Assembly: GCA_001949185.1 (NCBI GenBank)
Contig: BDGG01000009.1
Location: 1,787,624 to 1,851,623 of the forward strand
Origin: Ramazzottius varieornatus
Taxonomy: Eukaryota; Animalia; Tardigrada
Direction of reading: 5' to 3'
Length of the DNA: 64,000 bases
Positions 1 through 62,691 of the stretch are shown piece by piece. The notes under the pieces were generated by a model. That model did not search any database. It was not told the origin of the DNA and worked only from the letters and a program-made list of their open reading frames with translations. Made by a program: the position numbers and the translations under genes. Position 1 is the first letter of the stretch, and every line of letters starts with the position of its first letter.

Positions 1-3000
1 CTTGTTCTGCTTCTGTTCTTGCAGTATGACAATGTTGGCTGCTCGGCCAAGTCCTTTGGCCAGTATCGTTGCATTACCAATGCCGAACTTGTTTATCCGC
101 ATGATAGTCTTATTCTTTGACGTTGAAAGAAAGATTTGGTCCTCGAAGATGTCGATCTTGTAGGGCTCTTCTCTCTCTACATGATAAGAAGGGTTTGGTC
201 ATCCGGCCTTGCAAAGATAGATTGTCGAGGTTACCGAGGGAAAGATGCGTCACTCGCTGTCGGTCCTTTCCGTCGATGGTCATGGACTCAATGGCGGCTG
301 TTTTGGGGTCGGCCCAGTAGAGGCGCCGGTTTGCGTAGTCGATAGCCAGTCCCGTGGGATAGCGGATGTTCTGATTGACGAGAACCTTTCGCTCCGTCCC
401 GTCATACTTTGCTCGCTCTATCCGTGGCCTTCCGGAGATGTCCGTCCAGAAAATGTAACCTGACTCGGGATCCACTCTGATATCATAAGGCTCGGCAAGG
501 CCGCTCTTGATGACAGCGGTACGCGAAGACCCGTTCAGGTAGGCCATCTCGATCTGCTTCGTCTGACCGTCGATCCAGAATAAGCGCTCGTGGATCCACT
601 CTACTGCGATACCGCGCGGATCGTGCACGTTCGAAATCTGACAAAAAGCAAGTATTCAAACACCAATTGTCAATTTCCACTAAATGCTATATGGCAGCTC
701 GGCAAACTAACTGGACAAGATTCATTTTCCAAGTGGCGCACGCTCTCACCCAACAAGACCGAAAGTGTGCGCCACTTGAAAGAGGAGACTTTCCAGTCTG
801 ACTGTGTTTCCCCAACTGGCAGACGTTTCTAGTGTTGATGGATGCCTCCGTCGGGAAGAATAGGATCTTGTCGAGTTTGTTTGCCGTGCCTGCCATATCC
901 AGCAAAAGTATGTCCCGAGCGTTGCTCACCAATGGGATGGGCTCGCTTCGGTCAAAGTCGCCGCGTTCCTTTCTTTTCTTGGGCAAGGTCTGCTTGTAGA
1001 TGACATGGTTTTCGCGACTGCTCCAGTAGAGCGTGGCGTCACTGGGGTTCCTGAAGTTGACGTCGACAAAGTTGATGCGGTCGTCCTTTAGTTCCATCAG
1101 TTGTCGGTACTCTCCGCGGCGATGGTAGGGGTCTAGACTGCGCAGTTGATTCTGTTCGGCTACCAGCAGCGTAGCAGGCGCTCCAGCAGCCACACAGCTC
1201 TTCAGGCCGTTACGCCCATGCTGCTCAAGACGGTAGTCGCTGTCGCAGCTACAAGTGAAACGCTCCCTCTCACCATCCCAGGTGCAGCGTTGCGAGCAGT
1301 AACCGTACCGCTCACACGGATTCACATTACAGCTTTCTTCATCTGTGGAAAGTCAAACCTAGTCCACAAAATGCCTCTCCCTGATTGAAGGCCTGACAAA
1401 CAAGCTGAAGAAGAAGAAGATTCAAGTGGCGCACACTTTTAGCCAATGATACTGAAAATGTGCGCCACTTGAAAGAACAAGCTTGCCTATCGTCCATTTG
1501 AAGTGCGTAAAGTTTTAAGCTGTACTCGTACCCGAGTTGTCGCCGCAATTGTCGACGTTATTACAAAGGTCCTTCAGGGTGGTCAAACAGCGGCCATTCG
1601 TACAGCGGAAAGCGCATGTCGGTTGACAGTTCATCTCGTCACTAGCGTCGGCGCAGTCTTGGCGTTTGTCGCATCGTTGAGACTGCAGAATGCAAGCACC
1701 AGAGCCACATCGAAATCTGTCGGCCGTACAGGGAAGTGTGGCACACACTTCTCTTTGCTCGTCCGTTTTATCTCCGCAGTCATCTACCAAGCACAAACAT
1801 CATCATCCAAAGACTTTGCATTGCAGAGAGAGAGAGAGAGAGAGCTGACGAGAATTACCTTGACCATCGCACAGCCATGTTCGCGGCACACAGTGCTTGT
1901 TCTTGCATGTAAACTCGTCCGCTGCGCAAGCATGCTCACAGTGTACTTCGTCACTGGAGTCTCTACAAGCAGAAAGGGCCGATCAGAAGCCGCAGGGTAC
2001 ATGGAAGGCTGGTTTGGCCCAGTGTAGAGCGCACCTGCAGTCGAAGACGCCATCGCACAGAAACTTGTCAGGAATACAGCTGCTGTTGTCGGCACAGGGG
2101 CTGTAGCCTTCGGGACAGGCGCTGCTACAGTTCACCTCGTCGCTGCCATCCTGGCAGTTTGCTTCTATAGGAAATAGAAATACGGTCAGCAAGTGCTAGG
2201 GAAATGTCCAGGCTTCTTTTCTGACCTCCATCGCAGCGTAGTCTCATATCGAGACAGCGATCGCCACAAGCAAATTCCGTCGGCCCACAGGCAATGCCGC
2301 ACATCTGCTGCTTCTCGTCGCTGCAGTCCAAGCAGTCACCTGAGTAAAGAACGGCTTTTAGGTGAAGCCATGGGGTTGAAGGCTAATTGGCAAAAGGGAA
2401 CGTACATTCTTCATCGCAGGTCCATTTCTGCGAGATGCATTGGGAGTTGTTACACTGGAAGTGCGTCGCCAGATCGCATTTCTCCGACAGCTCTTGGCAC
2501 TTTCCCGCCGTACAGTTCCCAACCGTCTGCTCCATACTGGAGCAGTTCCGCTCGTCCTCAGTGTCAGCACAGTCAGCCTTGCCATCGCAAACCTGACTTC
2601 GTGGAATACAGCGGTTGGAATGCGGACACTTGAACTGGTTGGCCAGACATGAATAAGACGCTGCACACCAACAAAAATTAGCTGCTTATATCATCACATC
2701 GCATCACATCGCATCACATCAAAAGAAGGAAGCCTCCTTACAGCAATCGAGGAACGTCTCGTCGGAGCCATCCATGCATTCCTTCACACCGTTGCAAATA
2801 CTTGTTGGATGAAGGCACTTCCCTGTATCGTTTGTACATTGGAATTGGCCCGCAAGACAGGTGAAGTTCCGCCTGCAGCCCACTTCGTCCTCACCGTCTC
2901 CACAGTCATCCTGTAGGAAACGCAGCGAAGCTTGATTACTTCCGTTCTTTGACGAGCAAGTCGGACGCTGATTGGCAGGCCTGTAAACGGAACGTACCAC

Positions 3001-6000
3001 ATCGTTTTCCAAGTGAAGCACGTTTCCGGTTAGTAACAGGGAAAATGTGCGCCACTTAATACAACGATCTTGTACGTCTCGTTTGCCGACCACAGGATGA
3101 CAAACCTGTTTATCGCACTGCCACCATTTCGGTATACATTTGAACATATTCTTGCAGACAAAGTGTGCGTTGGAACAGTTTGGTTGACACTTTCTGCCGT
3201 CCTCGTCCAGGACAAAGTTCTCAGGGCAAGCACAGACACTGGTCACCGGGGTTCGCGAACTGTTGCTTGGTTTGAGCAAGCACAGGTTGCCACATTTTGC
3301 ACTGGAATTCCTTCCGCAAGGGTTGGGGTAACTTACTATAGTAGGGAAAAAACACAAAACTATGAAGGTAGGTACCGAGACAGGTTTGCCCGTGATGGAA
3401 AGCCAACTTACGAGGACTTTGTCGGTATGGATGGAAGACCTGAATGTCCATCGGACGATGGGCCGCAGCTTCTTGGACGTCGGTTAGCTCCATGCCAGAG
3501 AACTTGTTGGCCTTGTGGATCTGCTTGGTCTCCCAGTCTGTCCAAAAGAGGTAGTCTTCGAAGACCGACAGGGCGAAGACGTGGTGTAGATGATCGGGTC
3601 TTTGATGATCATTCTGCATGATGCGCCGACGATGCTGCAGGTTCAAGTCGGCCATGGCCATGTAGTCCAGCTTCGCATCGGCCCAGAAAATCGTGTTCGT
3701 AACGTAGTCAATAGCTGCAGAAAGTAGAAAAACCATTAAGCATTATTCTTTCGGATAATGAATGTCGGCAAATGAACTTTCCCAGTTCGTCTGCAAGTGG
3801 CGCACACTCCCAGTTAGTTACAGGGAAAACATGCGCCGCTTGTAATGACGATTTGGGCGAGATCATTTGTCGACGTCCCAAGTCTCTGGCCAAAGATTCT
3901 CACTGAGAGCGTTGGGCCAGCCCAGTTCTGTGCGATCCAGTTCAAGGCGGAAGACGTTGGAGCCGTCAAGGCCCATCTTGCCGATATGAGGCCTGCTTCC
4001 CCAGTCCGTCCAGTACAGGTATCCATGATGAGGGTCGACCACAACGGCTCGGGGCTCCTGCAGACCCTCTCGAAGAAGAATCTTCCTCGAGCCGCCATCC
4101 AATGTTGAGACTTCGATCGTGTCGGTTCCCTTGTCGCACCAGTAGAGGTTCTTGCCGATCCAGTCAACTGCGATACCATCAGGGTTGTGTACCGTCGTCG
4201 AGTGGAGAGTGTGAACTTTGTCTACTGCATCGGCCATGCACCACTTGTTGATGGAACTACCGGACGATGTCACATCTGCCCAAAGGAAATATTCCAAGGA
4301 ATATAAGCCCCAAAAACTCCTTTTCAGAAACTCATTTTAAAACAGCAGAAAATAGTACAGATGTTCTGATCAAATAGGAGCTCGGCTACGCATTCGACCA
4401 GATCGTCCCAAACTGGCGCACGCCTCCGGCCAATATCACAGTAAAACTTGCGCCACTAGGGAAAACGATTTGGGGAGAGCGTGTTTACCGACCATGTACA
4501 TATCAGCATACTATCTAGATTGCTGGCTGGTAAGTTATTCGTACCTGACCAGAAGAGGCACTGGGTGCTCCATTCAAAGTCCAGTGCGACGGCGTTTGTC
4601 AGGTTGGCCCTGACCACGCCCTTCTGGTTACCCGAGAAGCTGACGTTACGGATAAAGTGCTTGTTCGAGTAGATGAGTGTCGGTTGGATGTGGCTGCTTG
4701 CCTTGCAGGATCGTCCTCCGTTTATGGGACTGTAGCCGATGGCGCAAACACAGCGGAAACTTCCGATGGTATTGTAGCAGTAGTGACTGCATGGGAAGTC
4801 CGCACACTCGTTGTAATCAACGCACTCGCCCGACGTGTTGCTGATGGTGTAACCCCGGTCGCATTTGCACAAATGCCCTCTGGATTTCTCGATACACTTG
4901 CCGTAGGGCCCACAGGGGTTACTGGCGCAATCCCGAATGTCACACATGGTTTCCTACACAAAATTTTGGTGGTTATTCACGTCACGGCAACATTGATGGA
5001 TCATGAAAGCCTGGCAAACAAACTCGGCAAGAGTGGTTTTTTCAACTAGCGCCCATTTCTAGTGTTATTAACTGGAAGGGTGCGCAACTTGAAGAAGTAA
5101 CCCTGTAGCATTTGTTTGCCTAAATCGCCAATATCTTTCTTGATCTTCTGTCAATATCTACTTAATCGTATTCAGAGCGATTGATTTATTCAGTTTGTCC
5201 GAGCAAGAGAAGAGATTAGGGCGTACATCGGAAAGGTCACCACAGTCGTCGTTGTTATTACACAGCAGGGCGTCGTCGTCCAAGCACTTTCCGTTCTGGC
5301 ATCGGAAACTGGAGGATGGGCAGGTGGCGTTGAGCGCCTTCGGTAACTTGTTCTCCTCAGTGCTATTCTGCAGACTCCATGGGTCGTTTCCCTTCTCGGG
5401 AAACATTTCGTCGGAATTATCGCCTATCAAAACTTGACATCAGCCAAAAAGTATACAGAGAAAAATGACGAATTTGCAACGCTTACCGCAGTCGTCGTCC
5501 TTATCGAGAACAAATTCTTTCGGGATGCACCTAGAACCGTCCAAAATGTTTGGTGATGATTGGTTAATGTTATACGGTTGGTGATCCTTGCGAGTAAATG
5601 CAAGACTTGCCGATTGTTTTTACAGCGAAACTCGTTGAAGGAGCATCTGGAGATGGATTCACAGTGGTCAGTCTCGTCGGATGAGTCTGCAGGACCACAG
5701 TCGACCTCTGAAACGAGCATCCGACGATAATGAGCAATTTAAACCCTGCAATAACTAATCTTTAGTACTGTACCTCCATCACAGCGCCAGTCTGCGGGTA
5801 TGCATAAGCCGGAAATGCGGCAGCGGAAGTCCGATTGCGAACAATTGGTCTTTTGGCACAAGTCCAGTGCTTCGTCCTCTCCGCCTTCGCATTCGGGGTT
5901 GCCATCACACTTCCAGCTGGAAGGTATGCAGGAGCCGTCGAGGCACTGGAACGACTCTAAGGGACACTTTGTGGCACAGGCAGACTCGTCAGAGTTGTCG

Positions 6001-9000
6001 AAACAGTCTAGTTCGCCGTCGCATACCCATCTGCAAATGAGGCTATGAAGAATGCTGAGACAAATACAGCTGGACTTTACGTACATTTTTGGTATACATC
6101 CTTGGCCGTTCAGACATCGAAAGCTGTCGCTACTACAGGGCAAGGGTGTGGTCTTTTCCAGGTTGCTGCAGTTTGTCTCATCACTCCAGTCCCCGCAATC
6201 GTTATCTACAAACACAGAACTTGCACTTCATTTTCACTTCCATGTTGACTACACGAACCTGACTTACCTCCGTCGCATTTCCATTCCGGCAGGAAGCTAC
6301 AAAAGACCTTGAGTTAGGCCAAGCAAATAAAGTCAGAGTGGTCGGTGAAGAGCACTTTTATTCTTACCACATGGCAGAGTTAGGACAGGGAAGCATATCC
6401 CTTCCGTCGGGCGTCGTTTCGCACTTCCGGCCCTGGCATCCGACTTCATCACTGAAATCCCCACAGTCTTGTTCCCCTTAAAGACAAAATTCCTTGATGT
6501 CTCATTCGTTTGGAAAGCAGACAAAAAAAGACCAACCGCGACAAATGACTTCAGGCAGATCATTTTCTCTAGTGGCGCACACTTTCGGCACCACGAAGTA
6601 GGCAAAGGTGGGCCATAAGGATAAGGATCAAGGTGAAATCGTTTCGCAGATATTGCTTACCATCGCAGCGGTACTCAGACTTGATGCATTGTCCATTGCT
6701 CTTGCATCGGAACTCGTTGTCACTGCAGGTGCAGCCAGCTTCATCCGACCCGTCTGAGCAGTCTTGCAGCTTGTTACACCGACCTGCCTCCGATATGCAC
6801 ATTCCGCTGCTACAGCGGAACTGCTCTTTGGCACATCCAGGAGCCACGAGCCCGGCTTCGCAGTTGTGTCCATCGGCAAGTAGCTTACGGCTGTTGAAGC
6901 ATCGACAGGTGGTCCCTCGGCCATCTTCCGAGGGAAGACATATTTCAGCACAACCACCATGGGACTTGTGGCAGGGGTTCAAAGTGCAGTCTTGACTGCT
7001 GTCCGACACGGCGATGATGCCCATGGGCTGTCGACCCAGGTTCCCCTTGATCTTTGTTACATCTAGACCAGTGTACTTGTTGGCCCGAACTATGGCTCGT
7101 AATATCCAGTCCGTCCAGAAGATGTGCTCGCCGTAAACGGCTAAGGCAAAGGGATGCCGAACACTGTCCCACAACAAAACCTACAAATCGAACAAACTTG
7201 AAGAAACTATACAGGACCCTTGTCTCAAATGGCGCACGTTATCATTATTTTGGGCTGAAATTGTGCGTCACTTGAAAAGATTATTTAGAGAAGGAACAGA
7301 CTTTTCGTTCCGAGCCATCGAAGCGCGCCCGTTCGATCTTGTCCAGCAGAGCATCGGCCCAGAACAAAAACTGACTTCTGTGGTCTATGGTAATTGCATT
7401 GGGTGTCTTTATGTCTGTGAAGATGATCGTTTCTAAGTTCATCCCATCAAAGCTGGCTCGCTGAATGCATGGACGATCTTTGTTCCAGTTGGTCCAGTAT
7501 AGCTTCTGTGCACAGGCATCCAGCGCCAGGTTGCGCAACTTGTCTCCCGGGTCCAGCTGCAGCACTCGGTACGCAGACTGATGGGCCGACCGCGGACCCG
7601 CCAGAATACGGAAGAGCGAGGCGTTGTTATAACTTGTCCAGTACAGCTCTTGTCTTATGGGATCGAACGCTAACCCTTCCGCCGATCCAACGTCTGATAA
7701 GACACAAGTCAAACGAAATGGAAGCTTAGCGAACAGGCTTTACCACAGCCTTCTGCCAAGTGGCGCACGCTCCGAGCCAATAAAACTGGTAACGTGCGCC
7801 ACTTGGGAAAACAATCAAGCTTGACCAATGGTTTTTCCAAGTGGCACAGGCAGGCAGTCACACTGGAAACTTGCGTCACTTGGGGAAATTACTTTGTTAG
7901 GATTTATTTGCCGAGCTAGTAATATTTTAATGACATCGATGGAAATTTCTTACCGGCAGCGACTGTGCGATAGTCTGTTCCGTTGAAGAGGACGCTGAGA
8001 ATTTCCCCCTTCTGAATGTCGCTATAAAAGACTCGTGACGTTGCATAGTCAAAAGCTAGGCCGATGACATTGATCATGGCGGAAGAGTTGTGGAGTTTGG
8101 CAATGGGAGTATTCTTGTCAGAGTCAAGCAGTAGATGCGCGCTCTCGATACTACGACCTCGAGAGTACAGCAGGAAAGATGTGTGTGCGTCGCAGGAAGT
8201 ACCGTCAGGTGACAGGACACCATGAGCGCAAGCGCACCTTCTGCTACCGTTACCGTAAAAACATAATTCTTCACATCCGCCGTTGTTCTCCGAACAGAGG
8301 TTCCGCCCTTTCTGTCGCTCTTTGCTGAACACTGCTAAATCATTCACCGGCGAGTCAAGACTCTTGCGCATGACTGTCGGTGTTTTCAAGTCGGCCTTGT
8401 CAGCTCGGTAGATAATGCCTCGCTGAGGAAACCTACGCCACACAATCCATCAATCAAAGGACAAAATCTCGGACCTCAGCAAACAAACTCGAGCAGATTG
8501 CTTTTCCGAAGTGGCGCACGTTTTCATTGTTATCGGCAAAGAACGTGCGTCACTTGGGGAAAACGATCTGGTCGACTTCGATTGCCCGACTTGCATTTGG
8601 TCTATTGTCTGAGGAGACTTCTTTTACCTGTCGGACCAGTAGAGATGGTCCATGAAGACGACTAGCGAAAGAGGGTCCAGGAGAAACTTGGAGGCTGAGA
8701 GGAGGAGTGTACGGTTACTAAAATCCAAGTTGGAACGTTCGATCTTGTCCGAGGCGGCATCACACCAGTAAACTTGGTTTTCTTCATAGTCGATGGTGAT
8801 ATCCACTACTCGCTGTACTTCCTTCAAGGCTATCCGCTGCATACTGTTGAGCGAAAGTCGCTCGATTCTTGCGGTCTTGCTGAGGCCGCCATGGTCGCTC
8901 CAGAAAAGGAGGCCTTTGCCAGGGTGGTGGGCGATGGCTTTGGGCGATTCGATGTTCTCGTGTAGGAGAACATAGCGGGACGAGCCGTTCAGCCTGGCCA

Positions 9001-12000
9001 CCTCGATGGTCTTGCCCGTAGGGTTGGTCCAATAAATGTTACCAGCCATCCAATCCACCGCCATATTCTCCACCGAAGTCATGTCGTCTTCAACGATAAC
9101 CTGCCGACCTGTCAGATCGCGGCGGATACGATTCAACGAGGACGTCTTCGGGTCAACCCAGAATATAAAGGAGCTTTCTGCAAAAGAATCACATCCCTTA
9201 CACTCGGCTGACATCTTTTCCATCTTTGTTTTTCGCAATCTTCTTCGCTATAATTATTACAGATCAATAGTTTTATCAGTCCTATTTTCAAACAAATTTT
9301 CTACGTGCATTTCTATTTCCAGTTCATTTCTTGATGGGATGTCGGCAGCTCACTTGAACATGATGGTTTTTCAAGTAGCGCACAGTTTCGACTAACAAGA
9401 ATGTAAAAGTGCGCCACTTGAGATACGGACCATGGTCAAATTTACTGGCGGCAACCCCGCACTCTCTGCTTTTAAATATGATGGCTTACCTGCGTGGAAG
9501 TCGAGGGCAGTTGCCGTCTGGATACGTGAGACTCGGGGAAGTAACTCTTCGGTGTCAGCGGGATCCATTGCTATGCCATGGATCTGCGAGCCACTGGAGT
9601 ACAGCAAGGTGGAGTTGAGCGGAAGACAGGACAGCTCATCTTGGGGGTTCAGCACAAAGCCGGCGGTGCAGTTACAGGTCCGCGACATGTTGGGGGTGGG
9701 AAGGCACAACTGTAAGCAGTTTCCGTTGCGGACAGAGCAGGCGTTGGCTCCGCCCTGCACTTGCGGGCTGTACATCTTCAAACTGACCACCGATGGCGTG
9801 CTCCTTCTGATGACCGAATACGACAAGTTGTGCAGCGTGAGTAAGCCGATACCTGGATCGACATGATCAGCCGCTACCAGCAGCTGACCATCGAAGAAGG
9901 CGATGGCCAAGGGCGACAGGACGTCTTTGGCCTCTATGGCCTGTACAGACTTGCATGGAAACTTGTCTCTTAGATTGATGTCACAGTACTGTATCTTCTC
10001 CTGACCCTCACTGATCCAGAAAAGGTGTGACTGGTACTGAGGTCCATAACCGAAGCTTAGACTTCGGGGAGTGCGGAAGTGTGCAGTCGTTGATTCGTCA
10101 ACTGCCATGACGCGAGACCTTCCGTTAGTGCTGGACAGCTCGATGCGGTGTTTGCCATGGCCAATGTCCGACCAAGCAATGATACCCAAGACTGGGTTTA
10201 CAACGATTGAGATTGGTGTCTTGATCTCGCTTGTGGTGATTGCTTTGCGGAATTCACCCGACAGAGTACTAACGACGATTTCGCCGGCAGCTGAGGCACC
10301 CTCGCTGGCGAAAGCAATGAAGATGTTGCCTGATATCCAGTCGATGGAGATATCAGTCGGCTTTGGTCCGCCTGCAACACAAAATCCAACTGGTGCTGTA
10401 AGATAATCAATAAGAATAAATAATACCTTCAATAGTTGGCAGCACGGCAAGCAAAGTCGCCCAGATCGTTTTCCCAGGTGGCGCACGCTTCCAGCCCAAA
10501 CCAACGACAGCGTGCGCCACTTAGATTAACAATCTTGTCGAGTTTGATTGTTCCAGCAAGCGACGCCCGTGTCCTGTGATCTGGCTGGCAGCATGCGCCG
10601 CTGGCAAAAACGATCCGGCCGACCACCCAACTTGCTGGTAATTGCCTTACCTGGTGAGTCAATGACAGTTTCCATCAGCGACCCATTCAGGTTGGCCCGC
10701 ATAACGGACTTTGCCTTGGCGTCGACCCAATAGACATATTCCATACGGACATCAACGTCCATCGTAGTGGCGTTCTGGACATTAATGACTGCTGGGATGA
10801 AGTTGTGGTGAGCTTGGTCCAAAGTGACTCCTCGGATCTCCGTTGCCCGAGAAAACAACATGAATGTCCGAAAGGCTACAAGAGCGTAAGACAAAATCCT
10901 CATGCCCATGGAACTTCAAACTTGGCAGGATGATGCTCATCTTACGTTGACACTGCGTTGTACTTCCGGCTGTTAGCTGATAGAGATGAGGGCAACCGCA
11001 CTGATGCGTCCCCTTCCGCGAAATTAAGCACAGATGGGAGCAGCCGCCATTTCCGCTTCCACACGGATTGCTCACTGAAACATCATTATTACTTCCCAAG
11101 CTGTTCTTTGCAATACAACTAAGTAAAACCCATTCATCTGACTAACCCTTGGGCTGAATAGATGGATGCATGATGTGCAAGTCAAAGGGCTGGGTGGACA
11201 CTTGCACGATGGTTGTCACATCCGAGCCGTTCCATTTGTTTGCCTGGTAGGGGAAAAACCAGACAGAATTAGATACCGAAAATCTATTCTACAAATTTGC
11301 GGATTATATTCAATCAATGATACTTTGTGAACGGAATTGGTCCGCCAATCAGTCCAGTACACATGGGCGTCGTAGACAGCCACAGCAAAGGGATGCTGAA
11401 GGAAGTCGCCTCCACGAAGTACTTCTCGGAGGTCATTACCATGGATCGTCACTGTTTCGATCGCATCAGAGCTGCAGGAGGAAAGGGAAAATAACAATAG
11501 ATATTACGGATCACAAGCGCTTAACAATGATGAAGTATAGTAGTTACGGACTAGGCATCAATCCAGTATCTAATAAAGGAAAGTAAGGGTATATATTATG
11601 GATAATAATTGATTAAGTATGTCAATTACGTACAGGCGATGTGGAGAAGGGACAAAATCGATGGCAAGTCCGCTGGAAGAGAAATGCAAATTTGGGGTCA
11701 CAGATTGCGATGGCACAGATTATCGTTAGCTGTAGGCTACTTTACTTTGGCCACTTTCCTCCCTTCACAGCACTGATGTTCACCAAAACTTGCCGCTCTT
11801 CCCCGGCCATCGTGCAACTCTCGATGCGTGGGTAATCGGGATCCCAGTCTGTCCAGAACATCAACCTACGTACAAACTGTGAACTTTTCATTCAGCAAAA
11901 CTAGGACATATTTGGGAAGCCACAAAACGAAACCTGCAAGATCATTATCCCAAGTGGCGCACCATTCCAACTGATTAGCCTGATAACATGAACCACTTGA

Positions 12001-15000
12001 TACAGCGGTCAATATTTGATGTTAAAGTGGCGCACGCTTCCAGTTAATACACTAGGAACGTGCGCCAATTGTTACAGCGATCTTGCACATTTCGTTTAGC
12101 GGTCACCCACTTTTATATTACCCTTCTTCCGGGTCCAGAACGATTGCCCTAAAAGAAGAAAAAATGGCATGGAAATATTCCCAGCAATTAGTTTTGTAAT
12201 ATGGAACAAATTTCTGCTTGGACATACCGTGGGTTTGTCATGTTGCCGGCCACAACGGTGGAGCGGAATTGGCCATCAAGTCGAGATACTTCGATCTGAT
12301 CAAGGGTGCTTTCGACCTACGGGTAAACAAAGGAAGAAGAGGGGCGTTATGTGTGTCGTTCAATCAGCGACTGTATTGATCGCAAGTCCCAACGCGGGAT
12401 CTAACCCCTAGAAACCGCCTTAATACCCAATATAAATTCCATCCGATCCAGTCCACGGCGATTCCTTCAGCTGTTGGTAGCGAGTTCTCCACGACGTGTT
12501 TGATGCCGAAAACTTGAGCTAAAGAAGACACAAGTGGTATTGTTCACAGACACTTCTGGCTTCCGAGTAGAATGCAACCAACCAACCTTGGTCAACAAGG
12601 CTCCCAGAATATATCCTGTCGTCGACTACGTCGGTCCAAAAAATCTGTAAGGCGCATTAAAATTTAAAAGGTAAATTCACTCCTGCCTTCACTACGCCGA
12701 ATGGGTAATACGGAATATTATAATCATCGGTAGACTGAATACCAATTTTTATTTTTTATTGGGCGTGGTCGATTTACTAATGAGATAAGTCAAGTCGATC
12801 TGTATTAAAACTTTGTTGATAGGTTTATTAATTTGTCGAATATGGACAAGAAGTGGAAATACCAGATGTTTTCCGTATTCCCCAGCGTCCTGGAGGAAAT
12901 CGATGGCGATGGTGTTGCGCAATGAAGGGACGAGAATGGGTTGAATGAGAGGTTGGCTCAAGTCGATCATCCTAATCTCGTGTCGAGATGAGAATATAAG
13001 GCTGGCGCTTTGGTTGTCTGCACAAAGAAAGCCACAGTGATACCAAACGTCAAGTGAGACTAACCGACGGAGAAGGCGGACCCGGCTTACCCGCGGGTAA
13101 TCACTACGTACCCTGACTGTGGCAAGTAAAATGGTCCTCTGCCAATTGGAAGCCCGCATGGCACTCACATCGATATCCGATGGCTTCCGCCGTGCTTTGG
13201 CATATCTGGCTGCACAATCCCCAAGAACCGGCACATCGGTCAGTCTCTAAAACGCAAAACACTTGTTCTCAGTTTGCTTCCTACTTATGGGCTTACGGCC
13301 GACTGAACTTGAGGGTCGACTTACTCGAACAGGTCTTGTTGTCCGCCAAGTTCGGCGAGGATCCTGCCGGACACACACAGGCGAAACTTCCGTCGGGCAA
13401 CGGATGACACGTCCCATTGACGCACGGGTTTGGCCAACACTGACCCTTATCTGCAAAGTCGGACAGAAGTTTAGAGCATGTATCGACTTTTGCCCTCATA
13501 ATGTTTGACAAAAAATGGTTCAACCAAGAAGATACTGTAGTTCAAAAACTTTCTAGAAAATCCACAAAAGTTTCGGATTGATCAAAGTGGAAATATTTTT
13601 CTCCGACGGTTTTGTGATCCTTTGATCTGCGTAGATAGGTACAGCCTGGCGTGTTTTACGTCTTCAGTGTCAGATAAAGACCGGGTTGTAATAACGAGAC
13701 AAACTATGATCAATTTTGCAACAGTAGCTGACTGAGCTTGCTTTAATGGGCTTTTCGCACGTACCACATCCTGGTCCTTCATCCTGGCCAGCGCGGCAGT
13801 CGTTTTTCTTGTCGCAGAAACGACTTAACGTCACGCACTCTTTAACGCTGGCACTGGCATTGCACCAGCGATTAGGATAGTGGCATGTCAACACGCCGGC
13901 ATCTAGGGAGAGGAAGTAAGAACATTGTCCTACTCTGCTCTTAACCCCTCATCCATTTCAGCCGCTTTTAGGCCCACAAATAAACGATACCATATCACAT
14001 TACAATGATGTATGCAACCAACTGCAACCGCTGTAAAGTCGTCCGGAAACTAAAAGCCAGTCGGGCAAGGTGACTACATGGGCCACCCTGCCTTCTGCCT
14101 CCGCGATGACGTCATCGCTAAGGCGCGCTACAGGGTGGCCGACTCACTCTTCTTGCCCCGTACTTACCAGTCGGAAGTTCGACCGCATTCTCCTTTTCTT
14201 TGCATCTCCCGTCCGTAAAGGAGCAACGTGGGTTAGCTTTGCAATCGACTTCCGTTGCATTACCGCAATCCATAAACCCTGGGAAGAAAAGACGATGATA
14301 AGATGTAGATGGTCGTTAATGACGTTTACGCTCCCAACATCCAGGCCTATTCATACGTAATTGATGAGCCTGTTATGGTCCTTACCACAGTCGGCCAGTG
14401 TGGACAAACATCGGCCATCCGGACAGCGAAAATGATCCTTAGCACAGAAGGGATCATTCACTGAAACTGCAGAAATTTATCGTCAGAATCTAAACTAGCT
14501 CTTAAATCTTTTGGCGGTTATCTCAAATGGCCCATTAATCCGCCTGTCAAACGACGAGCTCGTAGCGTTCTCCATACAACGAGTTGAGTCGTTAACACTA
14601 AAAGTTCCGGCCAGAATACTTCCGTAGTATTTGAAGAAAAGTTCAAAATAGAAAAATGAACAATAAAATACCTGAAATCAAACCCAAACAATAATATCAA
14701 AAAAGTTATCATAATCGGATGTTGGCAAATGAATGCGCGCAGATCGTCTTCTGAGTGGCGCACGCCTTCAGTCAACAACAACAGAAACGTGCGCCACTGA
14801 AAATAACGATGTGGGTAAATTGATTTCCCACGTCCCAAATGACCAAAGTGACATTCTCAAGAAAAATGAACAAATTACCTAATGAAACTGCACTTTCCGC
14901 TATTTGCGAGAAAAATGAGGTTTGAAATAGTGTGGAGCGAAGTTCAAGTGGCACGTACCGCAGTCAACTTCATCCCGACCGTCGACACAATCGAATATTC

Positions 15001-40879: not shown

Positions 40880-40928
40880 TCTGTCGCGCAGTTTGACAGT
40901 GTTATCGCCTGAAAGTGTGCGCCACTCC
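40880..40928. repeat. Intronic palindrome core (hAT transposase intron)
   Basis: AGCTCGGCAAACAAACTAGACAA arm, degenerate left core, N25, GTGCGCCACTCC. Confidence 0.8.
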
Positions 40929-41517
40929 AAGATCCATCTTGTCAATTTTTGGAATTATATATGGACAAAGCCTAGGAATTATATATGGACAAAGCGCAGT
41001 AAGAGAAAATTACCTTCCGTCGAACTCGGTCTCGCATTCACTCTCGAACCTCATGTACTCATTGACCTCTTGCTGCGTGTTCGCGTCTTCTATTTGAGCT
41101 GAAACTACGCTCAGCTGTGCTTCTTCCTCCTCTGACTCGTCAGGATTTACCGGACTATTCGACTGAACGAGGGCTTTGAAAGCGGCCACCATGCTTGAAC
41201 CGCTGTCTGTCACTACGGCGGATATCTTCTACGAAGGAATCTCCCACCCAGCCAAAATCTCCCTCGTAAGCGTGAATAATCGAGCGGCACTGTGTGGACT
41301 CGGAAAAGTGCGACATGCCAGGGTCACCCTTCGCATCGTCTTCGTGAGATGATCATACATCCGCGCCGTTACCGCCAGCTTCGACTCAGACATTCCGCGT
41401 TTAGTCCAGATGTCTACAAATAAATAACACTAAACGTCAATCTCAGTCAAAATAGTAACCGCTCAAGATTGAAAATAACTGTCATGTCAGTGAGAAATTT
41501 GGACGACATCATTTTTC

Positions 41518-41647
41518 CATCTGGCGCACACTTTCAGCCAAAAACACCGGAGCAGGCGCCACTTGGGACAACAGTTAATGTCATTAAGTCTGCTCGTCAT
41601 AATGGCGCAGACTTTCAGCAAATAACAGTGAAAATGTGCGCCACGTA
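41518..41647. repeat. Intronic palindrome tandem dimer (hAT transposase intron)
   Basis: Cores 41518-41565 (N24) and 41599-41647 (N25). Confidence 0.85.
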
Positions 41648-43781: not shown

Positions 43782-43964
43782 AATTTAATCAGCAATCACC
43801 CATGGTCCCACTCCCATACGATTAACTCACAAGTTAGTGTCTTGACTGTCTTCTGGAATCCATCGCCAATCTGCCATCTCCGAATCGTGCGGTGACCCTG
43901 ATCCACCGGTACCGATTGTCCTGTGTGTTTTCGCCTTGTCTCTAGAAGCTGTGGTGAGCGAGAC

Positions 43965-50871: not shown

Positions 50872-53666
50872 ATGTCCGACCCATCGAGTTACAACTTCGA
50901 CGAGGATGGATATCGCTTGCTGTTTCTGGACTGGCTCAAGGAATGGAAGGCCGAAGCAGCCACCGTGCAGAGCAAGATCCAGTACACGTACGCCAACGTA
51001 TGGAGACCCTACTGCGTTATCGCAACCTTCTCCATCTAATTAGAACAACTCTGTTTGCAGGCTATCAAGTCTCTGAAGAACTATCCGCTTCCTGTGTACA
51101 GTGGACATGGATGTATTAAGTTGAGCTTTTTCGGCAAGTGATCACCTATCGTGCCTTCTGTTGCCGCTTTTTTAGCTATGCACTGTACGTGAACTACAGT
51201 GTTGACAATGCGAATACAGTGTCAAAAATGCATTCCATCCGGCGGTCAGGTGATGCCGCCTACGATCAACCGATATTATGGGACCACGCGACCACCGGAT
51301 GGAATGCATTTTTTACACTGCATTTGCAGTCAGTAATTTGATACTGGATGTGGTTATGGGATGTCGCCGCATTTTGCATGAAAATCAATCTTATTGATTC
51401 CTGATTCAAGAAAATACTTCATCTTTCAGGCGACCACACATGCAAGAAACTGGACAAGAAGCTGACATCTTACTTGAAAGAACATAAGCTGCAAAGTAAG
51501 CGGAATATTTGGTGATACTTTCCGCTAGCTCTTCGAAGTTGACGCGAGAACCCTTGCGTTGTTCAAGTGCTTCAACTGTGTTTAGGATTTTCGAAAAGTG
51601 GTTGTTGTCGTGTCGGGATTCTTGCTAGAAACCTGGGTTTTTGTTGACAGGACTTGGCGGGCCTGATCCGTTCACTGTTCTAACCTCGTCATCCAGCAGC
51701 GACAAGGTAAGAAAAGGCGCCAAGAAGTCATCATCTGAACTGCCTGAGAAGGACGATATCGATGGCACTGATGTGAAAGCGGATGGCCCACAAGCTAAAG
51801 AGAAAGCGAAAGGGGGTCACCGAAAGAAAGGGCCGAAATCAAAGCTCGAAGACGACGAAGTTAAGGGACAAGCTGCGACAGATGCCTCTCCACGGCCCAA
51901 CAACACCGACCGCCCGGCTTTAGCTTCGAAGTCCGTAGAAGGTACGTTGACTTTAGTTGCCGGTGTGTACGAGCTTAATAGTGTGCTGACATGGGAATGA
52001 TTGTTGTGTGGCACGCAGATGCGCCACTGAGGAGGCGATGCATAATCACAACGGGCAGTAGCACCGTCTTGACGCTTGGAGGTGGTGGTGGCTTCATGGC
52101 TAGAACCGCTTCGACCACTGAGATGGCCGACAGGATAGCGCAGCAGTCCATAGCTGCACGCTTCAAGAATATCCCCTACGAGGAGTACACAATGCAGCCG
52201 GGAACCTTCAACGTGGTACTTTGTGTCGACAACCAGGAAATACATGGCAAAGGGTGGGGACATGTATGCTGTACTTTCTCGATACTCACAATCTTGGCTG
52301 ACTGGTTGTTTCCCTCTGTTAGTAACATATGCAGCAAGTTGGACGTCATCGCCGAACTGAAGAAGCACGAGCTGGACTTTGACGTTCGTGGTTTGAAAGT
52401 GGGGGACTTTCTGTGGATTGCCCGCGAGAAGAGCGAATATGCTGGGGGAAGGAAGCCTCGAGAGCTGGTACTGGACTTCATAGCAGAAAGGAAGAGAGGC
52501 GATGACCTGGCTATCAGTATCAAAGATGGTCGATATACCTGTCAAAAGGTAGTATGCAAAGCCAAAGTTTATAGCTGGCAAAGCCTGTATATTTTGGCCG
52601 TCGGCAAATGAAGTAAACCTGATGGTTTCCCATGTGGCGTGCTCTTGCAGTCACTAAGAATGGAAAGCTGCGCCACTTGATATAAGGTGCGATCTTATTT
52701 GCCGACGTGTCAAATTCCTTGATGAGTCTAACGGATGATGGTTGGTGCATTCAAAAATAGTTCCGAATGAAGATGGCGGGTTTGCGTCGGCTGATCTACA
52801 TCATTGAGGACAGCCAGCGCTTTCAGCATAAAGGCCTGAAGGATGGCGCTTTCGATCAGGCTGTGACCAATCTGGCAGTGCAAGACGGCTTCATAGTCAA
52901 GGAAACGGACAGTTTACGGAAAACCGCCGAGTACTTGTTGTCGATGACCATGTTCCTACAACGTAGCTACACGGTACAAACTGCCTTGCCTTTACCGCAA
53001 ACTTTGGCATCTCCTCTTTTGACTGCTTTTGTCCTTTTGCAGACCAAGACTTTGAGAAGCCTGGCCTTTGCCGAAAGATGGGCAAAAAGCCAAGAGGAGT
53101 TTAATGTCAATCTGCCTGTCCACGGTCTGCTTACTTATAGCGCTTTTTCCGCCGTAGCCAAAACCAACCAGGTTCGACTGTAGCCCTCTTTCTCTCTTCG
53201 AGATGAATCGATACCTTGTCCGACGGATGTCTGTCCACCGTCTGTGTCATTTCTTTCAGACCAAGAATGTCTCTCAAGCATTCCTCCTTCAGTTGCTGGC
53301 TCTCGATGGAGTGTCGCCGGCCAAGGCTTCCGCCATTGTAACCAAGTATCCCACCCTCAAAAGGTAAGGTTGTGGACGACCTAGTGGTCGATGGCCATGG
53401 TTAGAAGCCAGGTAGATGTGACGGAAACCCACTGTTTTAGATTATTGAATGCCTACGACGCTCTGGCTACGGAAGACGAAAAGAAAATGATGCTTCGGGA
53501 CATTAAGTTTGGAAGCGGCATAACGTCAGTCTCTTCCCTTTGACCATCAATGCCTCGCAGATCACAACTGCGTTTTATGGTGCTTTTCTGCTATTGCAGG
53601 AGTATTGGTCCCGCAATCAGCAAGCGACTGTACAAACTTTACTGCACCAATGGACCTCTTCGATGA
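50872..53666 (+). CDS. MUS81: Crossover junction endonuclease MUS81 (multi-exon)
   Basis: N-terminal HhH (AIKSLKNYPLPV..FFG|DHTC), ERCC4 domain VVLCVDNQE, VGDFLWIA, FIAERKRGDDLAISIKDGRY, C-terminal HhH (GVSPAKA..YPT; IGPAISKRLY). Confidence 0.92.
51203..51332. repeat. Intronic inverted-repeat element family 2
   Basis: ~43-bp arms 51203-51247 / 51290-51332 containing CAGTGTCAAAAATGCATTCCATCCGG, in MUS81 intron 51134-51429. Confidence 0.75.
52631..52679. repeat. Intronic palindrome core (MUS81)
   Basis: CATGTGGCGTGC-N25-CTGCGCCACTTG. Confidence 0.82.
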
Positions 53667-53978: not shown

Positions 53979-55252
53979 CTAGCTCCAGTCCATCTGTTTG
54001 TCCTGATCGGCCATCTGACCTGCCAGTTGGCCCACCACATTGTCTTCAGCGTCTTCCTCCGACACAGCCGCCCTTTCCGCCATGCTGTCTTCCATCAGCG
54101 CCGCTTTCTCACTACTGTCATGTACTTTGGAAGAAGCTCCAGCAGGCTGAGTATTGGACGCCTCCGCAGCTGGTCCGCTTTCTCGGGCGACCTGACTGAA
54201 GGCACCTTCGCCATTGTCTTCTGCGGCCATCCCCTCCTGTTCCGGTGCCGAGACTTCTTCGCCGTTCTCGCCTCTCATCTTTCTCAGCTTGAGGCGCAAA
54301 TCAGTAGTCTTGTCAACGTCTTCGCCCTCTTGGGATTCCGAGTCGTTTCGTTCTTCCCACTTGCGCTTGCCGAAGGAGCGCCGTTGGTTGGTTCCTCCTG
54401 CCATGGCAAAGTCGCCTGCTTGGATTCTCTCCATACGGTTCTGGATCATCTTGCCGAAGCCTCCTCGCCCACCGTCGTAGTCTGTACGGAACTCGTCGCG
54501 TACTTGCCCACCAGACTTGCCCCGACCGTACTGTCGTCCTTCGATAAAGCCAGCGTCCCAGTCACAGCGGATGACACGCTCGTCTAGCCGTGTCCCGTTC
54601 ACGTATCGAAGTGCATCTTCGGCATCTGCACGTCTGTAGTACCTGCAAGACATTTCCATCATCTTACTTCAACCTTTAAACAATCTAATTGGGCCTAAGT
54701 TAGGCAACTCAACTTGACAAGAAGGCATTACCCAGATGCGCCTAAGTGGCGCATACTTCCAGCCAAAACACCAAGCTGGCGCGCCACTCGGGGAAACAAT
54801 CAAACCTGTCAAGATCGTTATTCCAAGCGGCGCACACTACCATCCAATAACAATGGTAACGTGCGCCACTTTCGAAAACACTCTTGCACAGTTTCCATTA
54901 GTCCTTTATAAGGACGTTCATAGTCTTCGTACTCAACAAAGCAAAATCCGCAAGGTGTTTTGGTGAAGCGATCCAGCCCGATGATACATCGTTTGACGTC
55001 TCCACTCTTAGAGAACAAGTGATGAATTTGATCCTCTGTCGTAAAGAAGGACAGGTTACCGACGTAGAGAGTGGTACTGGCCCGTAGCTTGTCTTCTTGC
55101 TCCTTCATCGACCCCTAAGAGCGAGACGGACAGCATGTCAGCCAGCCTGAAGATCGGCCGTGTGTCATGTGCAAGCCTAGCGATCGTTCTATTACCTGGA
55201 ACTGCTGGTCTCGATAAGCGCTGAGTGAGCCATTCCTCTTTGAAGCGGACAT
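53979..55252 (-). CDS. NCBP2: Nuclear cap-binding protein subunit 2 (CBP20) with long C-terminal extension
   Basis: [10 protein letters not shown]|[28 protein letters not shown]|[28 protein letters not shown]. Confidence 0.93.
54743..54872. repeat. Intronic palindrome tandem dimer (NCBP2)
   Basis: Cores 54743-54790 (N24) and 54824-54872 (N25). Confidence 0.88.
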
Positions 55253-58566: not shown

Positions 58567-61500
58567 TCAGCTGGTTGCTGCAGTTGGACAATAGGTGATT
58601 TCAAGATGGTTGGTGCTGGGGCCGGCGGTCAGCGCAGGCGAGCATTTTTCAATGGCCAATTGTTTCATAGACTGTAAGTTGTCGGCCAGAAGCAGTTGGT
58701 CGCATAACCTTTTGTCAAGAGAATCATCTTAACAGCGGATAAGCACATAAGAGATGCTGGAGGAGGCTGTAATTATGACAGCAAGTGTACACTGCGTACG
58801 TCGATTGGGCCCTTACCGTTTTCGGGCGGCAGAAACATCGAGGAGGGCCAGCTTTGCCTGTCGCTCAAGCCTTGCGGCTTTTGCTCTGACCGTCAGTCGC
58901 TGCTGGGTACTTGGCAGGACTTGGACCTTGCGACTCTCCAGTGCCTTCTGCATGCCCTGGCACAGACTGTTCAGCAGTGACAGGCGGACAGAAAGCTGAA
59001 AAAGGCGCTCTTCCATGGTGATCAGCATCTGGCTGAGCTAGAGGAGGGACCACAAAGTTGAAAACCTTGGCGCCGACGAAAAGCTTCGTCAGTCTTACTG
59101 CACTAACCATTCCTTCCCTGTGTTGAAGGTCCGTCATGTTAAGGGTTGGAGACGTCAGTTTCTGCAAAGTTTCCTTCTTGCACTGCACGACCTGCCTGGT
59201 CAAGGCAAGGCGACGTTCCACGGCTTTGACCAGCTAAAGGACAAGAGCGATGCATGACATGTCGACCAATAACTTGAATAATGCAGCAGATATTTGTACC
59301 TGCTTCCCTAGTTCTTTCCTGGTCTTGACATAGGTGGTTAGCAGAGAATCGTGCCACTTCAGTCGCTTATAAAGCAGCTTGATGTCCGTGTCGGCACTTT
59401 TGTGTAGCCATTCAACGTAAGAATCGAGAGCTCGATGTCGCAGCTCGATTTCGTGGCTGGCTTTTACTGCGACGAAAGAACAATCATTTCCATATTTTGT
59501 CGTCACAATTCCTCTCAGTAGAGCTCTGTCAGAGGTTGGTTGGTTAATGATGATGAACCTACCGACTTGATTCTGTTCCACATGCTTCAGCATGTATTGA
59601 GTGGTGATATCGATCAGCAGCGACGCTCCACAAGCTCGAAGTTCCGATACCAGCTCGAATGTTTCCGTGAAAGTTTCGCATTTCAGTAAGTAAACATCCA
59701 AATCTTTGCGCAACCTATACACATACTCAAGTCGACATCGACATCAAAACCTACTTGAAATTAGAATTTGGCCAGATTCAAGGCCTTACATCAGAACTCG
59801 CGCAAATCCTCGCTCGTATTCTTCTTCGAGGTCTTTCATCTTTTGGCGCTCTTCAAAATGAGCTTTGCGAAGGCGCGATAACGACGTCCATAAACTTGAT
59901 TTGCCATGCTGCGCGTTCTCCAATTGCCTGGCAAAAACATTGAATAAAGTTACACTTTTCCCCCGCAAAGTCAATGCTGTGGGGGTTTACAGGGAGACAA
60001 TGGGCGAAACGGACCTGACTTTATGCCGATACTCTTCCTTCTTGCGCTTGAGCTGGTCGTTGAGGCAAGTCGTCCGGTCCCTGTGCTCATGCATCCCACC
60101 CTGGCTGAAACTAAGTAGCTTGCGCAGCTCTTGTCGATGACGATCCAAAGCGTAGTATTCAGATTGCATCTCCTCGACTTTCCTGCTCTTCTCCAACAGC
60201 TCGGCCGCGGCGTACCGGTGGGCAGCCTCATTCTGTTGACATTCCTCTTGCAGCTGCCGCTCTTTCTGTCGGACCTTCCTACGCTCCAGGCTCTGAGAGC
60301 GCTGCTCGACATGCTGAAGTAACACAGCAAGGTTATCGCTACAAAGCCTACAAATTGTCACAATCGGGACGTCAGCAGATGGACTCATCCGTATCCTTCT
60401 TATCAAGCGACGCACGCTTCATGCAATGATCGATAGAAGCCTCCGCCTCTTAGGAAGGCGATCTGGATAAAATCAGCTGCCAAAGTCCCAGATGGCTTTC
60501 TTTGGTATCATGGATTGAGCTGTAGATTTTGTGCCAAAGCTTACCATACGCTCGACTTTTCCTTCGAGCTTTCTATATGCTTCAGCTCCCTTCCTCAGGC
60601 GCATGAATATGGAGAACCTTTCTTTGAACTTCTGCCTTGCTTGGCGATACAGTACCGTGTTCTTGTCCCGCCGTTGGCTGCCTCGCGAACCGTAGGTGTT
60701 AATGAGCTTTCCCAGGGTGATAATCTGTTGGCGATGCTGATCTGCTTCGTACTCGTACTCGGTTGCCTAAAGAACATTATCAATTCTCTACCGATGGTTG
60801 GACGAATGGGGGAGGCAGGTAGACGAAGCGTACAAGACAGATCTCTGAGTGGCGCATTTTTCCGTGGTTAGTGGTTGAAAGCGCGCGCCACTTCAGGCTA
60901 TGAACTTGTATGTTTGGCTTGCCCGCCTGTCATCTTTCTCTCTCGAGGGCTATATGGTCAAAGACCTACCTGTTCGAGCAGTTTCTCGGTAAAGTCTCGG
61001 TCGCTCCTGTTCTGCCCCGTCACACGGCGGGTCTCCAGGTCCAGGTTCCTCTTGAGCGCGCTTAGTCGATCCCGCTCCCGCAGATGGCTCACTCGCTGGC
61101 ACGAAGCTGCCCGCACAAGGGCTTCGGCCTCGCCCAGCTTCTGTTGTAGCGACAGTCTGAAATACAAACCGACATTTGAGAGGAAACGTTGCCAGAGCGG
61201 ACGACCTTACTTTTCCTCTTTAGTCTGAACTTCCGCCTCCAGCTCGCTCCTCATACTTTGAGCTAGGCTCTTGTAGCTTTCAAACAAGGTTGCGAGCTCG
61301 CCTTCAGCCCTTTCTCGGTTCTGCAGGACTAGGCGTATGTCTTTGTCAAGCTCGTCGTTGGCGGCGCAGTTTGCCTGCCAATGTTGCTGAAGACGAGTAA
61401 TAATGGCAGCCAACGCTTGAGCTTCTTCCGCACTTTTCCTACCAAAGCAAGGAAAGAGAAACTATAGCTCTAAGGCTAGCAGTACTTACCACGGTAAAGA

Positions 61501-62691
61501 GCCTTTTGATTACCCGTTGTCGATTTCCAGCTGTGCACACTCCCTTTGGATACGCGGTATGCGATTGCTGATGGATAGCAGTTCCTGCTCTTCTGCCCGT
61601 ATGTCCACTTGCGCGTTCCTTATACGATCGTGGATTTTGAGCATCATGACTTCGTTCTCCTGCATATGCTTGGAGGTGTTGTCGATTGTTGTTTGGTAGT
61701 GCTCGGCTTGCTGGGAAAGAACTTGTCCTTCCAAGATCCAGCAAGTGACCAGATGTCGCAGCTCTGGCTCTGTTGGGATCTTTTCCAGTGTAGAGCAGAG
61801 CTGGTTCTTGTCGACCTCCAATCTGCACAAGCCAACTGAAACATATATCTATCTCAAAACCTGTGCGTGGCAATCTCCAATAAATAGATACTCGGCACAT
61901 CCAGATACAGTAAGGGAGACTGGCAGACGAAATGTCCAACATCTGTCTCAAGTGGCGCATATTTCCCTTATTAATAGCCAGAGGAGTGCGCCACTGGAAA
62001 CGACGATCCTGGACGTCTCCTTTGCCGCATTCCTGCAGGCACTCTTGGTGGCGACCTACTTGTCGATTTCTTTATTCAGTCGTAGCAGATGGAAGCGGGA
62101 TTTCTCCAGCTCGTCATTGAGTCTTCTGGCATCTCCTCGAAGGCCTTGCAACTGCTGTTTGAGCTTCCTGGGTAGGGCATCAGCTTCGGCGACTTCTTCG
62201 GCATGATCCAGGCAGTAGCGAATCTGATCGACAACGAGGTCGTGCAGAGTTCGCTGCTGCTGGAACTTCTGGCTATACCTCTGGATAACTGATGTTATTC
62301 TCCGCCGTAGGTCGCTGGCTTGGCCGTATGTGACCACCTTGTGTTCAAAGGCGCTATCAAGGGCACTGTTGATCGGAAAAGTATCCAGTCGAGCTTCGAT
62401 GCGGTGGAGGTCCTTGGAGAAGGATGACCGGTCTTCGGCCAACTCGGCCAGAACGCCGTTTATCGAATCCGGCTTCCAGTTGGATTGGTAGAAAATATCC
62501 AAGGCTACGTTTTTGAAGGTTGCAGTTTTCGTTCCATAGCCCTCTGTGAAGATGGGATTCTCCTTTTCCGAGCGACTCGCGGGAACATAGCTTTGTAGTT
62601 CGTCCAGCGGATCATGATCAGAACCGATCCTGTCGTGTTGGTGACAGCCGGTGCGGTCGGCAGCAGGAACCGGCAACGATACATACTCCAT
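58567..62691 (-). CDS. Large coiled-coil protein of unknown family (multi-exon)
   Basis: About 10 exons with heptad-rich E/Q/K/R/L translations joined by plausible GT-AG junctions; family not recognised. Confidence 0.6.
60846..60894. repeat. Intronic palindrome core (coiled-coil gene)
   Basis: TGAGTGGCGCAT-N25-GCGCGCCACTTC. Confidence 0.85.
61949..61997. repeat. Intronic palindrome core (coiled-coil gene)
   Basis: CAAGTGGCGCAT-N25-GTGCGCCACTGG with GGCAG..TTTGCC arms. Confidence 0.88.

Follow-up and report, generated by a model that had tools for sequence, protein, structure and literature searches.

Palindromic elements concentrated in the introns of the tardigrade Ramazzottius varieornatus: a probable family of old, non-autonomous DNA transposons

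What are the palindromic elements of about 120 bp that recur in intron after intron of a 64,000-nucleotide stretch of the genome of the tardigrade Ramazzottius varieornatus (assembly GCA_001949185.1, contig BDGG01000009.1, positions 1,787,624 to 1,851,623; the whole stretch is referred to below as the window), and why do they lie there? A sequence-only reading of this stretch had offered either a palindromic mobile family, targeted to introns or tolerated in them, or a domesticated cis-element marking gene bodies. The results presented here make it likely that the family is an old and very abundant MITE (miniature inverted-repeat transposable element), i.e., a non-autonomous cut-and-paste (class II) DNA transposon, of an ordinary, decayed kind. 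Its bias towards introns is real; preferred insertion into gene bodies, with selection acting elsewhere, is the best guess at its cause.

In the window, the 12-nt core of the element, searched with at most one mismatch, occurred 35 times against 0.33 expected, and the strict paired core pattern three times against none expected; paired cores with up to two mismatches per arm numbered 24 and were alignable over ~125 nt. Two profiles made from the copies and run with nhmmer gave 36 matches each, which correspond to 35 loci because one copy is interrupted (Table 1). The earlier count by eye, 31 paired copies plus half-sites, has thus held up. The half-sites at ~6569 and 32499 turned out to be partial copies of the family, and the one at ~14950 a short fragment adjoining a 5' splice site. 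Across the 64-kb window there was no Rfam match at the gathering score, and in metagenomes the core pattern retrieved nine loci, all of them unrelated GC-rich hairpins without the arms of the family.

The consensus is a single long palindrome of ~125 nt in total, with a 58-bp stem and a 9-nt loop. Read inwards, the arm consists of the terminus TGGGAGCTCGGC, the conserved AAGTGGCGCAC and eight further paired positions, followed by the 9-nt loop around CCAATAAC; the two arms are complementary across 58 consensus positions, as befits the inverted repeats of a MITE. Full copies are 120-128 nt long and have no coding capacity, which is likewise in keeping with the size of such elements, and as RNA they are predicted to form single hairpins (-47 to -58 kcal/mol, z -3.2 to -6.1); the copy taken as representative of the family is indicated in Table 1. 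The arm-to-arm spacing ranges from 44 to 50 nt among copies, many of which are truncated or doubled. About 18% of the sampled loci are two-core forms with a period of 72-85 nt (e.g., window 54746-54869 and L021:1524-1646); their linker, derived from the inner arms, is itself a short palindrome, and they suggest a dimer subfamily.

All 35 loci of the window lie in introns, ten of them by RNA and the others by their flanking exons, and not a single copy falls in the ~21 kb outside gene bodies; if copies were placed in proportion to length, the chance of finding none in this non-genic DNA would be 3e-12 to 5e-15. Within the window, the claim of the sequence-only reading that the elements occur only in introns therefore stands. 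The RNA evidence consists of contigs of four runs from one study and covers positions 6500-12400 (5.9 kb), where twelve GT..AG joints on the minus strand were found in the LRP-like gene. Six introns skipped by these contigs, measuring 121, 260, 195, 312, 279 and 256 nt in the order of Table 1, hold nine loci, and a tenth RNA-supported locus lies directly upstream of the exon boundary at 6660. Where the element is absent, introns defined by RNA have lengths of 70, 72, 80, 73 and 79 nt, and half of the RNA-verified introns of this gene contain the element. A further RNA skip of 158 nt (11472-11629) contains a 14-nt microexon of the same gene, seen as 14 letters between the two sides of the joint. 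Loci outside 6500-12400 were assigned to introns from the exons around them together with GT..AG sites, or because coding segments of one strand enclose them, while an automated splice-site inference, which gave over-long introns in three of five test cases, was used in a supporting role only. As for the host genes, Pfam agrees with the names given to them earlier, recognizing LDL-receptor A/B repeats, Peptidase_C48, UQ_con, Actin, CSN4, ERCC4 and zf-BED plus a hAT dimerisation domain, with the exons matched singly, not as a joined spliced protein, in the protein and domain searches; the ACTL6 exon found close relatives in the protein search, namely P0001 (89% identity) and the Paramacrobiotus protein P0002.

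Did the elements enter existing introns or create new ones? In introns defined by RNA or read by eye, 7-54 nt separate the 5' splice site from the start of the element and 17-154 nt its end from the 3' splice site, and in the introns examined it never occupies the last 17-22 nt. Subtraction of the element leaves a remainder of 53-104 nt in the RNA-defined, SENP-like, NCBP2, COPS4 and 60-61 kb introns, with exceptions of 181 nt and ~0. In distant paralogs of the hAT transposase gene of the window (70-76% identity), the distance between the two exons around one palindrome-bearing intron is, judging from coordinates only, 67-88 nt in three paralogs out of four and 205 nt in the remaining one, compared with 242 nt here. 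Considering the normal size of the remainder and the short introns of these paralogs, the element entered existing short introns and is not, as a rule, an introner. On the introner explanation, each copy would have landed in an exon and given rise to a new intron there, its splice sites being either brought along or recruited, and introner families are indeed often MITE-like and gene-enriched (PMC9860276). One intron has this appearance: 7179-7299, 121 nt long by RNA, is almost wholly element, with a weak donor (AAA/GTCTGT) and the acceptor inside the terminal arm, and it may be an old intron that has been trimmed or, as a rare event, one newly gained. However, ten of the eleven introns examined hold the element in mid-intron, with 53-181 nt of non-element sequence that amounts to a normal length and is distributed at variable offsets on its two sides, so that the element ends do not coincide with the intron boundaries; the intronic sequence around the element shows no conservation between copies, and the hAT paralogs apparently keep the intron without the element. 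As a general rule, intron creation is largely refuted by these facts, and we regard it as highly improbable.

The family is dispersed far beyond this locus. Across the whole assembly (55,842,812 bases in 200 contigs, the extent used for extrapolation) there are 1,106 matches to the exact 10+10 core pattern and none to the reversed control pattern. A sample of twenty 10-kb pieces (200 kb), taken at even steps from four large contigs, contained 33 copies, which corresponds to ~9,200 copies genome-wide (95% interval 6,300-12,900), or 1.9% of the DNA; dispersal and a copy number this high are what is expected of a MITE. The copies are ~75% identical to the consensus and on average 60% identical to one another (maximum 81%), and no young copies were seen among those compared; the family is therefore old.

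In R. varieornatus, introns occupy 22.2% and intergenic DNA 42.8% of the genome, i.e., introns constitute 34% of the non-coding DNA (PMC5531438). At least 23 of the 33 sampled copies are intronic against 34% expected by length (p = 3e-5), which is a strong excess. About four of the copies lie at piece edges, where their position is not judgeable, and at most six (L034:5695, L040:6807, L043:2747, L050:3531, L033:5373 and L031:7952) are possibly non-intronic, so that on the genome scale 'only in introns' has to be softened to 'mostly'. A self-trained coding-potential map, which misses small or atypical exons and hence undercounts intronic copies, gave 0.77 copies/kb in short same-strand gaps versus 0.21/kb in opposite-strand gaps. 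This map labelled 12 copies of the window as 'other', and those of them that were re-read by eye or covered by RNA are intronic; in the 200-kb sample, hand inspection assigned to introns the copies at L037:6499 (SLC5-like gene) and L034:2674 (integrin-alpha intron 1), as well as those in glycogen-debranching-enzyme, trehalase and actin-related genes. Taken together, the proposal of a palindromic mobile family, tolerated in introns, strongly enriched there and present in both orientations, agrees with these data.

The insertion sites are informative as to the class of the transposon. The flanks read A-W-W / element / W-W-T, i.e., the target is an A/T-rich AWWT. Of 45 copies, 13 have the same dinucleotide next to the element on both sides, where chance would give 5.6 (p = 0.002; 2 against 4.7 for a mirror-image control); among the 21 copies with canonical ends there are 9 such cases, and no duplication longer than 2 bp was found at the flanks. 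With a decay of ~25% per site, 13 identical pairs in 45 fit a real 2-bp duplication inside AWWT, and the earlier statement that no consistent target-site duplication is visible has to be corrected to a weak signal. A duplication of this length would presumably suit a CMC-type element such as Mirage. Covarying paired columns (e.g., C-G or A-T at 33/107) are limited to 14 positions and mark subfamilies that were already symmetrical at insertion.

Two genes for a transposase or a transposase-like protein were met with in the vicinity of copies. The hAT transposase gene of the window (39324-42400, minus strand; zf-BED and hAT dimerisation domain, in-frame TAG near 41232) is multi-copy, with four to five other genomic copies of 92-95% identity, intronic palindromes included. 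As the partner of the family it was rejected, since the copies lie inside its introns, not at its ends, and were duplicated along with it. Another gene, at L031:6363-7922 on the plus strand (G000:C1:406363-407922), is an open reading frame of 520 codons with DUF4218 and a C-terminal chromodomain; judging from these domains, it would encode a transposase of CMC/KDZ-like type that includes a chromatin reader. A copy of the family begins 30 nt downstream of this reading frame, and three copies lie ~3 kb upstream.

Is the hairpin, then, maintained by selection? If the element were domesticated, the hairpin or its GC-rich core would be kept because it shortens the effective intron, binds a protein or marks the gene body. 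The near-exclusively intronic location, the stable folding still predicted for full copies and the ~92% conservation of core columns in copies found through the core would all agree with this. The last of these, however, is largely an ascertainment effect, as the core is conserved at only 77-85% in copies found by the arms alone. Outside the 14 subfamily-diagnostic columns, to which covariation is confined, 68.1% of positions are paired in the actual arms and 67.1% after arms of different copies have been exchanged at random (z = 2), i.e., no pairing was detected beyond that left by independent decay of the arms, as a selected hairpin would show. The loop points in the same direction as the host gene in 32 copies and in the opposite one in 42, which is no bias, and neither the variable arm spacing nor the many truncated or doubled copies speak for a preserved structure. 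With arms decaying near-independently and without orientation bias, nothing points to domestication; the copies look like neutral relics, and the gene-body mark of the sequence-only reading appears quite improbable.

Hardly any credence is given to the idea that the intronic hairpins are processed to RNAs resembling small interfering RNAs or microRNAs and are kept for that. It is true that stems of ~58 bp lie within transcribed introns and that MITE hairpins yield small RNAs in other organisms, but the pairing bears no sign of constraint and no microRNA family of Rfam was matched. The suggestion that the RNA hairpin loops the element out of the intron would fit the stable predicted folds and the normal length of the intron remainder; as a counterpoint, RNA indicates that introns of 195-312 nt are spliced even where the copy they hold has decayed.

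Considering the probable MITE nature of the family, we propose the following sequence of events. A partner's transposase would have integrated the copies at AWWT, an A/T-rich target whose two central bases were probably duplicated. The copies landed in existing introns of ~70-80 nt, in most cases 7-54 nt past the 5' splice site, and lengthened them to the 195-312 nt of the introns still spliced out in the RNA; since that time they have decayed nearly neutrally. The fold-back shape may have made new insertions harmless in introns of ~70 nt. The bias would most likely result from preferred insertion into transcribed gene bodies and from selective removal from exons, untranslated regions, promoters and splice signals, the two acting together, with a quicker intergenic turnover adding to it.

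Could turnover suffice by itself? On this explanation, insertion was uniform over non-coding DNA, the intergenic copies were later deleted or overwritten, and the introns of conserved genes kept theirs. The family is old enough for this, the R. varieornatus genome is thought to have shrunk (PMC5531438), and two intergenic tracts of the window contain repeats: the tract at 55300-58800 consists to ~70% of nested repeats (among them a ~408-bp unit in at least 35 copies and a ~970-bp unit) whose 83-92% identity makes them younger than the family, and that at 27.6-31.75 kb includes an 830-bp repeat of 78-90% identity. However, the tract at 43.8-47.25 kb and most of that at 27.6-31.75 kb are unique sequence without a copy. 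In addition, the short introns of the window carry 8.7 copies per kb of element-free intron, and uniform insertion at this rate would exceed the available DNA; nor does uniform insertion agree with the ~10-fold differences in copy density between genes, the LRP-like gene having ~10 times the average number of copies per kb of intron. Local hopping or duplication within that gene is ruled out, as its copies are no more alike (mutual identity 0.564) than they are to copies on other contigs (0.596), and a gene-level preference is needed to account for its density. From the copy-free unique tracts, the intron density and the excess in the LRP-like gene it follows that turnover explains a part of the bias but not all of it, and as the sole explanation it is rather unlikely. 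Since turnover is insufficient, we infer that, besides selection, insertion favoured certain gene bodies that are transcribed. A stronger version, in which the transposase was actively steered to transcribed gene bodies, possibly via a chromatin-reading domain (the reading frame with DUF4218 and a chromodomain being a candidate), is a tentative idea that we consider improbable at present.

Several points weigh against interpreting the family as a MITE with an insertion preference for gene bodies. The signal of target duplication is weak and only 2 bp long. The autonomous partner sharing the arm termini, for which the earlier reading had proposed to look, did not come to light: a search of 420 kb, not extended to the whole genome, gave no long element with the arms at its ends, and of 108 strong arm matches three lacked the core and none delimited a longer element. 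The preference itself is deduced from densities, not observed as insertion, and a part of the intergenic absence could be due to turnover, as in the tract at 55.3-58.8 kb with its ~70% of repeats. Intron 7179-7299, being nearly all element, suits intron creation better than insertion. Finally, intron assignments outside 6500-12400 rest on predicted reading frames and not on RNA or annotation.

Table 1. Copies of the palindromic family in the window (strand of every element given as '.'; gene strand in brackets)
Feature	Position	Strand	Evidence
Copy broken by ~70 nt of extra sequence, LRP-like intron (gene -)	687..894	.	profile match, flanking exons
Copy reduced to core and inner arms, LRP-like intron	1387..1487	.	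core pattern, flanking exons
Full copy, LRP-like intron	2969..3095	.	profile match
Full copy, LRP-like intron	3757..3884	.	profile match
Full copy, LRP-like intron	4371..4502	.	profile match
Full copy, core degraded, LRP-like intron	5003..5134	.	profile match
Partial copy, intron with end at 6659	6539..6647	.	profile match; RNA exon boundary 6660
Copy occupying nearly all of 121-nt intron 7179-7299	7202..7281	.	RNA
Two-core form, unit 1, intron 7694-7953	7716..7817	.	RNA
Two-core form, unit 2, intron 7694-7953	7812..7922	.	RNA
Full copy, representative, intron 8431-8625	8464..8599	.	RNA
Full copy, intron 9178-9489	9332..9462	.	RNA
Full copy, intron 10371-10649	10432..10552	.	RNA
Partial copy, adjoining the previous one, intron 10371-10649	10546..10621	.	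RNA, profile match
Two-core form, unit 1, intron 11864-12119	11909..12010	.	RNA
Two-core form, unit 2, intron 11864-12119	12023..12112	.	RNA
Full copy, mid-intron (~490 nt) between two LDL-A exons	14712..14838	.	flanking exons read
Two-core form, unit 1, SENP-like intron (gene -)	21866..21979	.	flanking exons read
Two-core form, unit 2, same SENP-like intron as 21866..21979	21982..22044	.	flanking exons read
Two-core form, one unit, SENP-like intron	22642..22732	.	flanking exons read
Second unit beside 22642..22732; core 13 nt from 5' splice site	22732..22805	.	flanking exons read
Full copy, SENP-like intron, ~12-16 nt past 5' splice site	23256..23389	.	flanking exons read
Half copy, ACTL6-like intron (gene +)	32492..32538	.	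profile match, Pfam
Copy, ACTL6-like intron, exons 32070-32456 / 32654-33577	32536..32634	.	profile match, Pfam
Full copy, UBE2M-like intron (gene -)	38221..38353	.	profile match, Pfam
Copy, intron of multi-copy hAT transposase gene (-)	40839..40948	.	flanking exons read
Two-core form, one unit, another hAT intron	41475..41577	.	flanking exons read
Two-core form, second unit, hAT intron of 41475..41577	41576..41684	.	flanking exons read
Full copy, COPS4 intron (~49620-49821), 9 nt past 5' splice site	49697..49816	.	flanking exons read
Copy, MUS81-like intron (gene +)	52599..52717	.	profile match, Pfam
Two-core form, one unit, NCBP2 intron (~54645-54931)	54698..54801	.	flanking exons read
Two-core form, second unit, NCBP2 intron (~54645-54931)	54797..54894	.	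flanking exons read
Full copy, intron of 58.8-62.7 kb gene (-)	60360..60495	.	flanking exons read
Full copy, next intron of 58.8-62.7 kb gene (-)	60805..60937	.	flanking exons read
Full copy, intron of 58.8-62.7 kb gene (-)	61911..62038	.	profile match

Some other features of the window deserve mention beside these copies. Palindromes of a second type, with termini like ACAGTGT(C/A)AAAAATGCAT, were found at 51209-51328 and 35419-35558 and are rare in the genome sample; both lie between same-strand coding segments and are probably intronic too. The assembly gap at 43563-43612 is the centre of a 167-nt inverted repeat (43254-43420 / 43613-43779), which is 96% complementary, is unrelated to the family and, as a possible fold-back structure, may have interrupted the assembly. 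The copies nearest to the gap end at 41684 and start at 49697, and as the gap is thus at least ~1.9 kb from any copy and lies in an unrelated repeat, the finding of the family does not depend on it. RNA runs X7-X10, which come from one study and are labelled as four other organisms, share 13-14% of the sampled 31-mers of 6500-12400, an overlap that could be due to related tardigrades or to common repeat cores.

In terms of genome composition, ~1.9% of this 56-Mb animal genome consists of a single, decayed MITE family, which, if mostly intronic, represents ~8-9% of all intron DNA. In the window, the element largely determines which introns are 'long' (195-312 nt) as opposed to the usual 70-80 nt. 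The family therefore bears on the differences in intron span among tardigrades, on the tolerance of short-intron genomes to insertions and on the steering of DNA transposons to gene bodies. If a steered transposase were indeed at work, this would be an animal case of intron-directed DNA transposition that reshapes intron lengths genome-wide and occasionally creates an intron (7179-7299). A model of the family should be included when tardigrade repeats are masked and genes predicted, since the coding scan used here ran straight through several copies.

The repeats of R. varieornatus are mainly DNA transposons, many of them non-autonomous and with a complex internal structure, and in the repeat library of this species, 15% of which is curated, 651 consensus sequences are classified as 'Unknown', MITEs and introns not being mentioned (Peona et al., 2024; PMC11071193). 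A full-text literature search found neither the motifs of the family nor an intron-biased tardigrade MITE. As far as this full-text search goes, the family appears to be an undescribed one of MITEs, with an unusually sharp intron distribution; as it stands, the kind of element is ordinary and no new mechanism is involved.

Known MITEs include the Stowaway and Tourist types, and fully palindromic MITEs occur in nematodes, fish and mosquitoes. Like these, the R. varieornatus elements are short and non-coding, have inverted-repeat arms, thousands of copies, an A/T-rich target and apparently a short duplication, form subfamilies with symmetrical arm variants and are frequent in or near genes. Unlike typical MITEs, the element forms a single hairpin over its entire length, a duplication of no more than ~2 bp lies within AWWT, there is no known partner, and the intron bias is stronger (35 of 35 loci and, in one gene, half of the introns verified by RNA). 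Introners, which are intron-generating transposons whose ends coincide with splice sites or supply them (Gozashti et al., 2022; PMC9860276), resemble the family in being MITE-like, gene-enriched and spliced out as intron sequence. The difference is that our elements lie at variable offsets inside otherwise normal introns and are ~60% identical to one another, while introners are usually near-identical; only intron 7179-7299 is introner-like. Fungal introner-like elements, said to have been described by van der Burgt and co-workers in 2012, reportedly have a predicted stable secondary structure, and over-long introns with a strongly folding repeated sequence would be common to both systems; the fungal elements, however, are said to multiply as whole introns, whereas in R. 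varieornatus a transposon resides within older introns.

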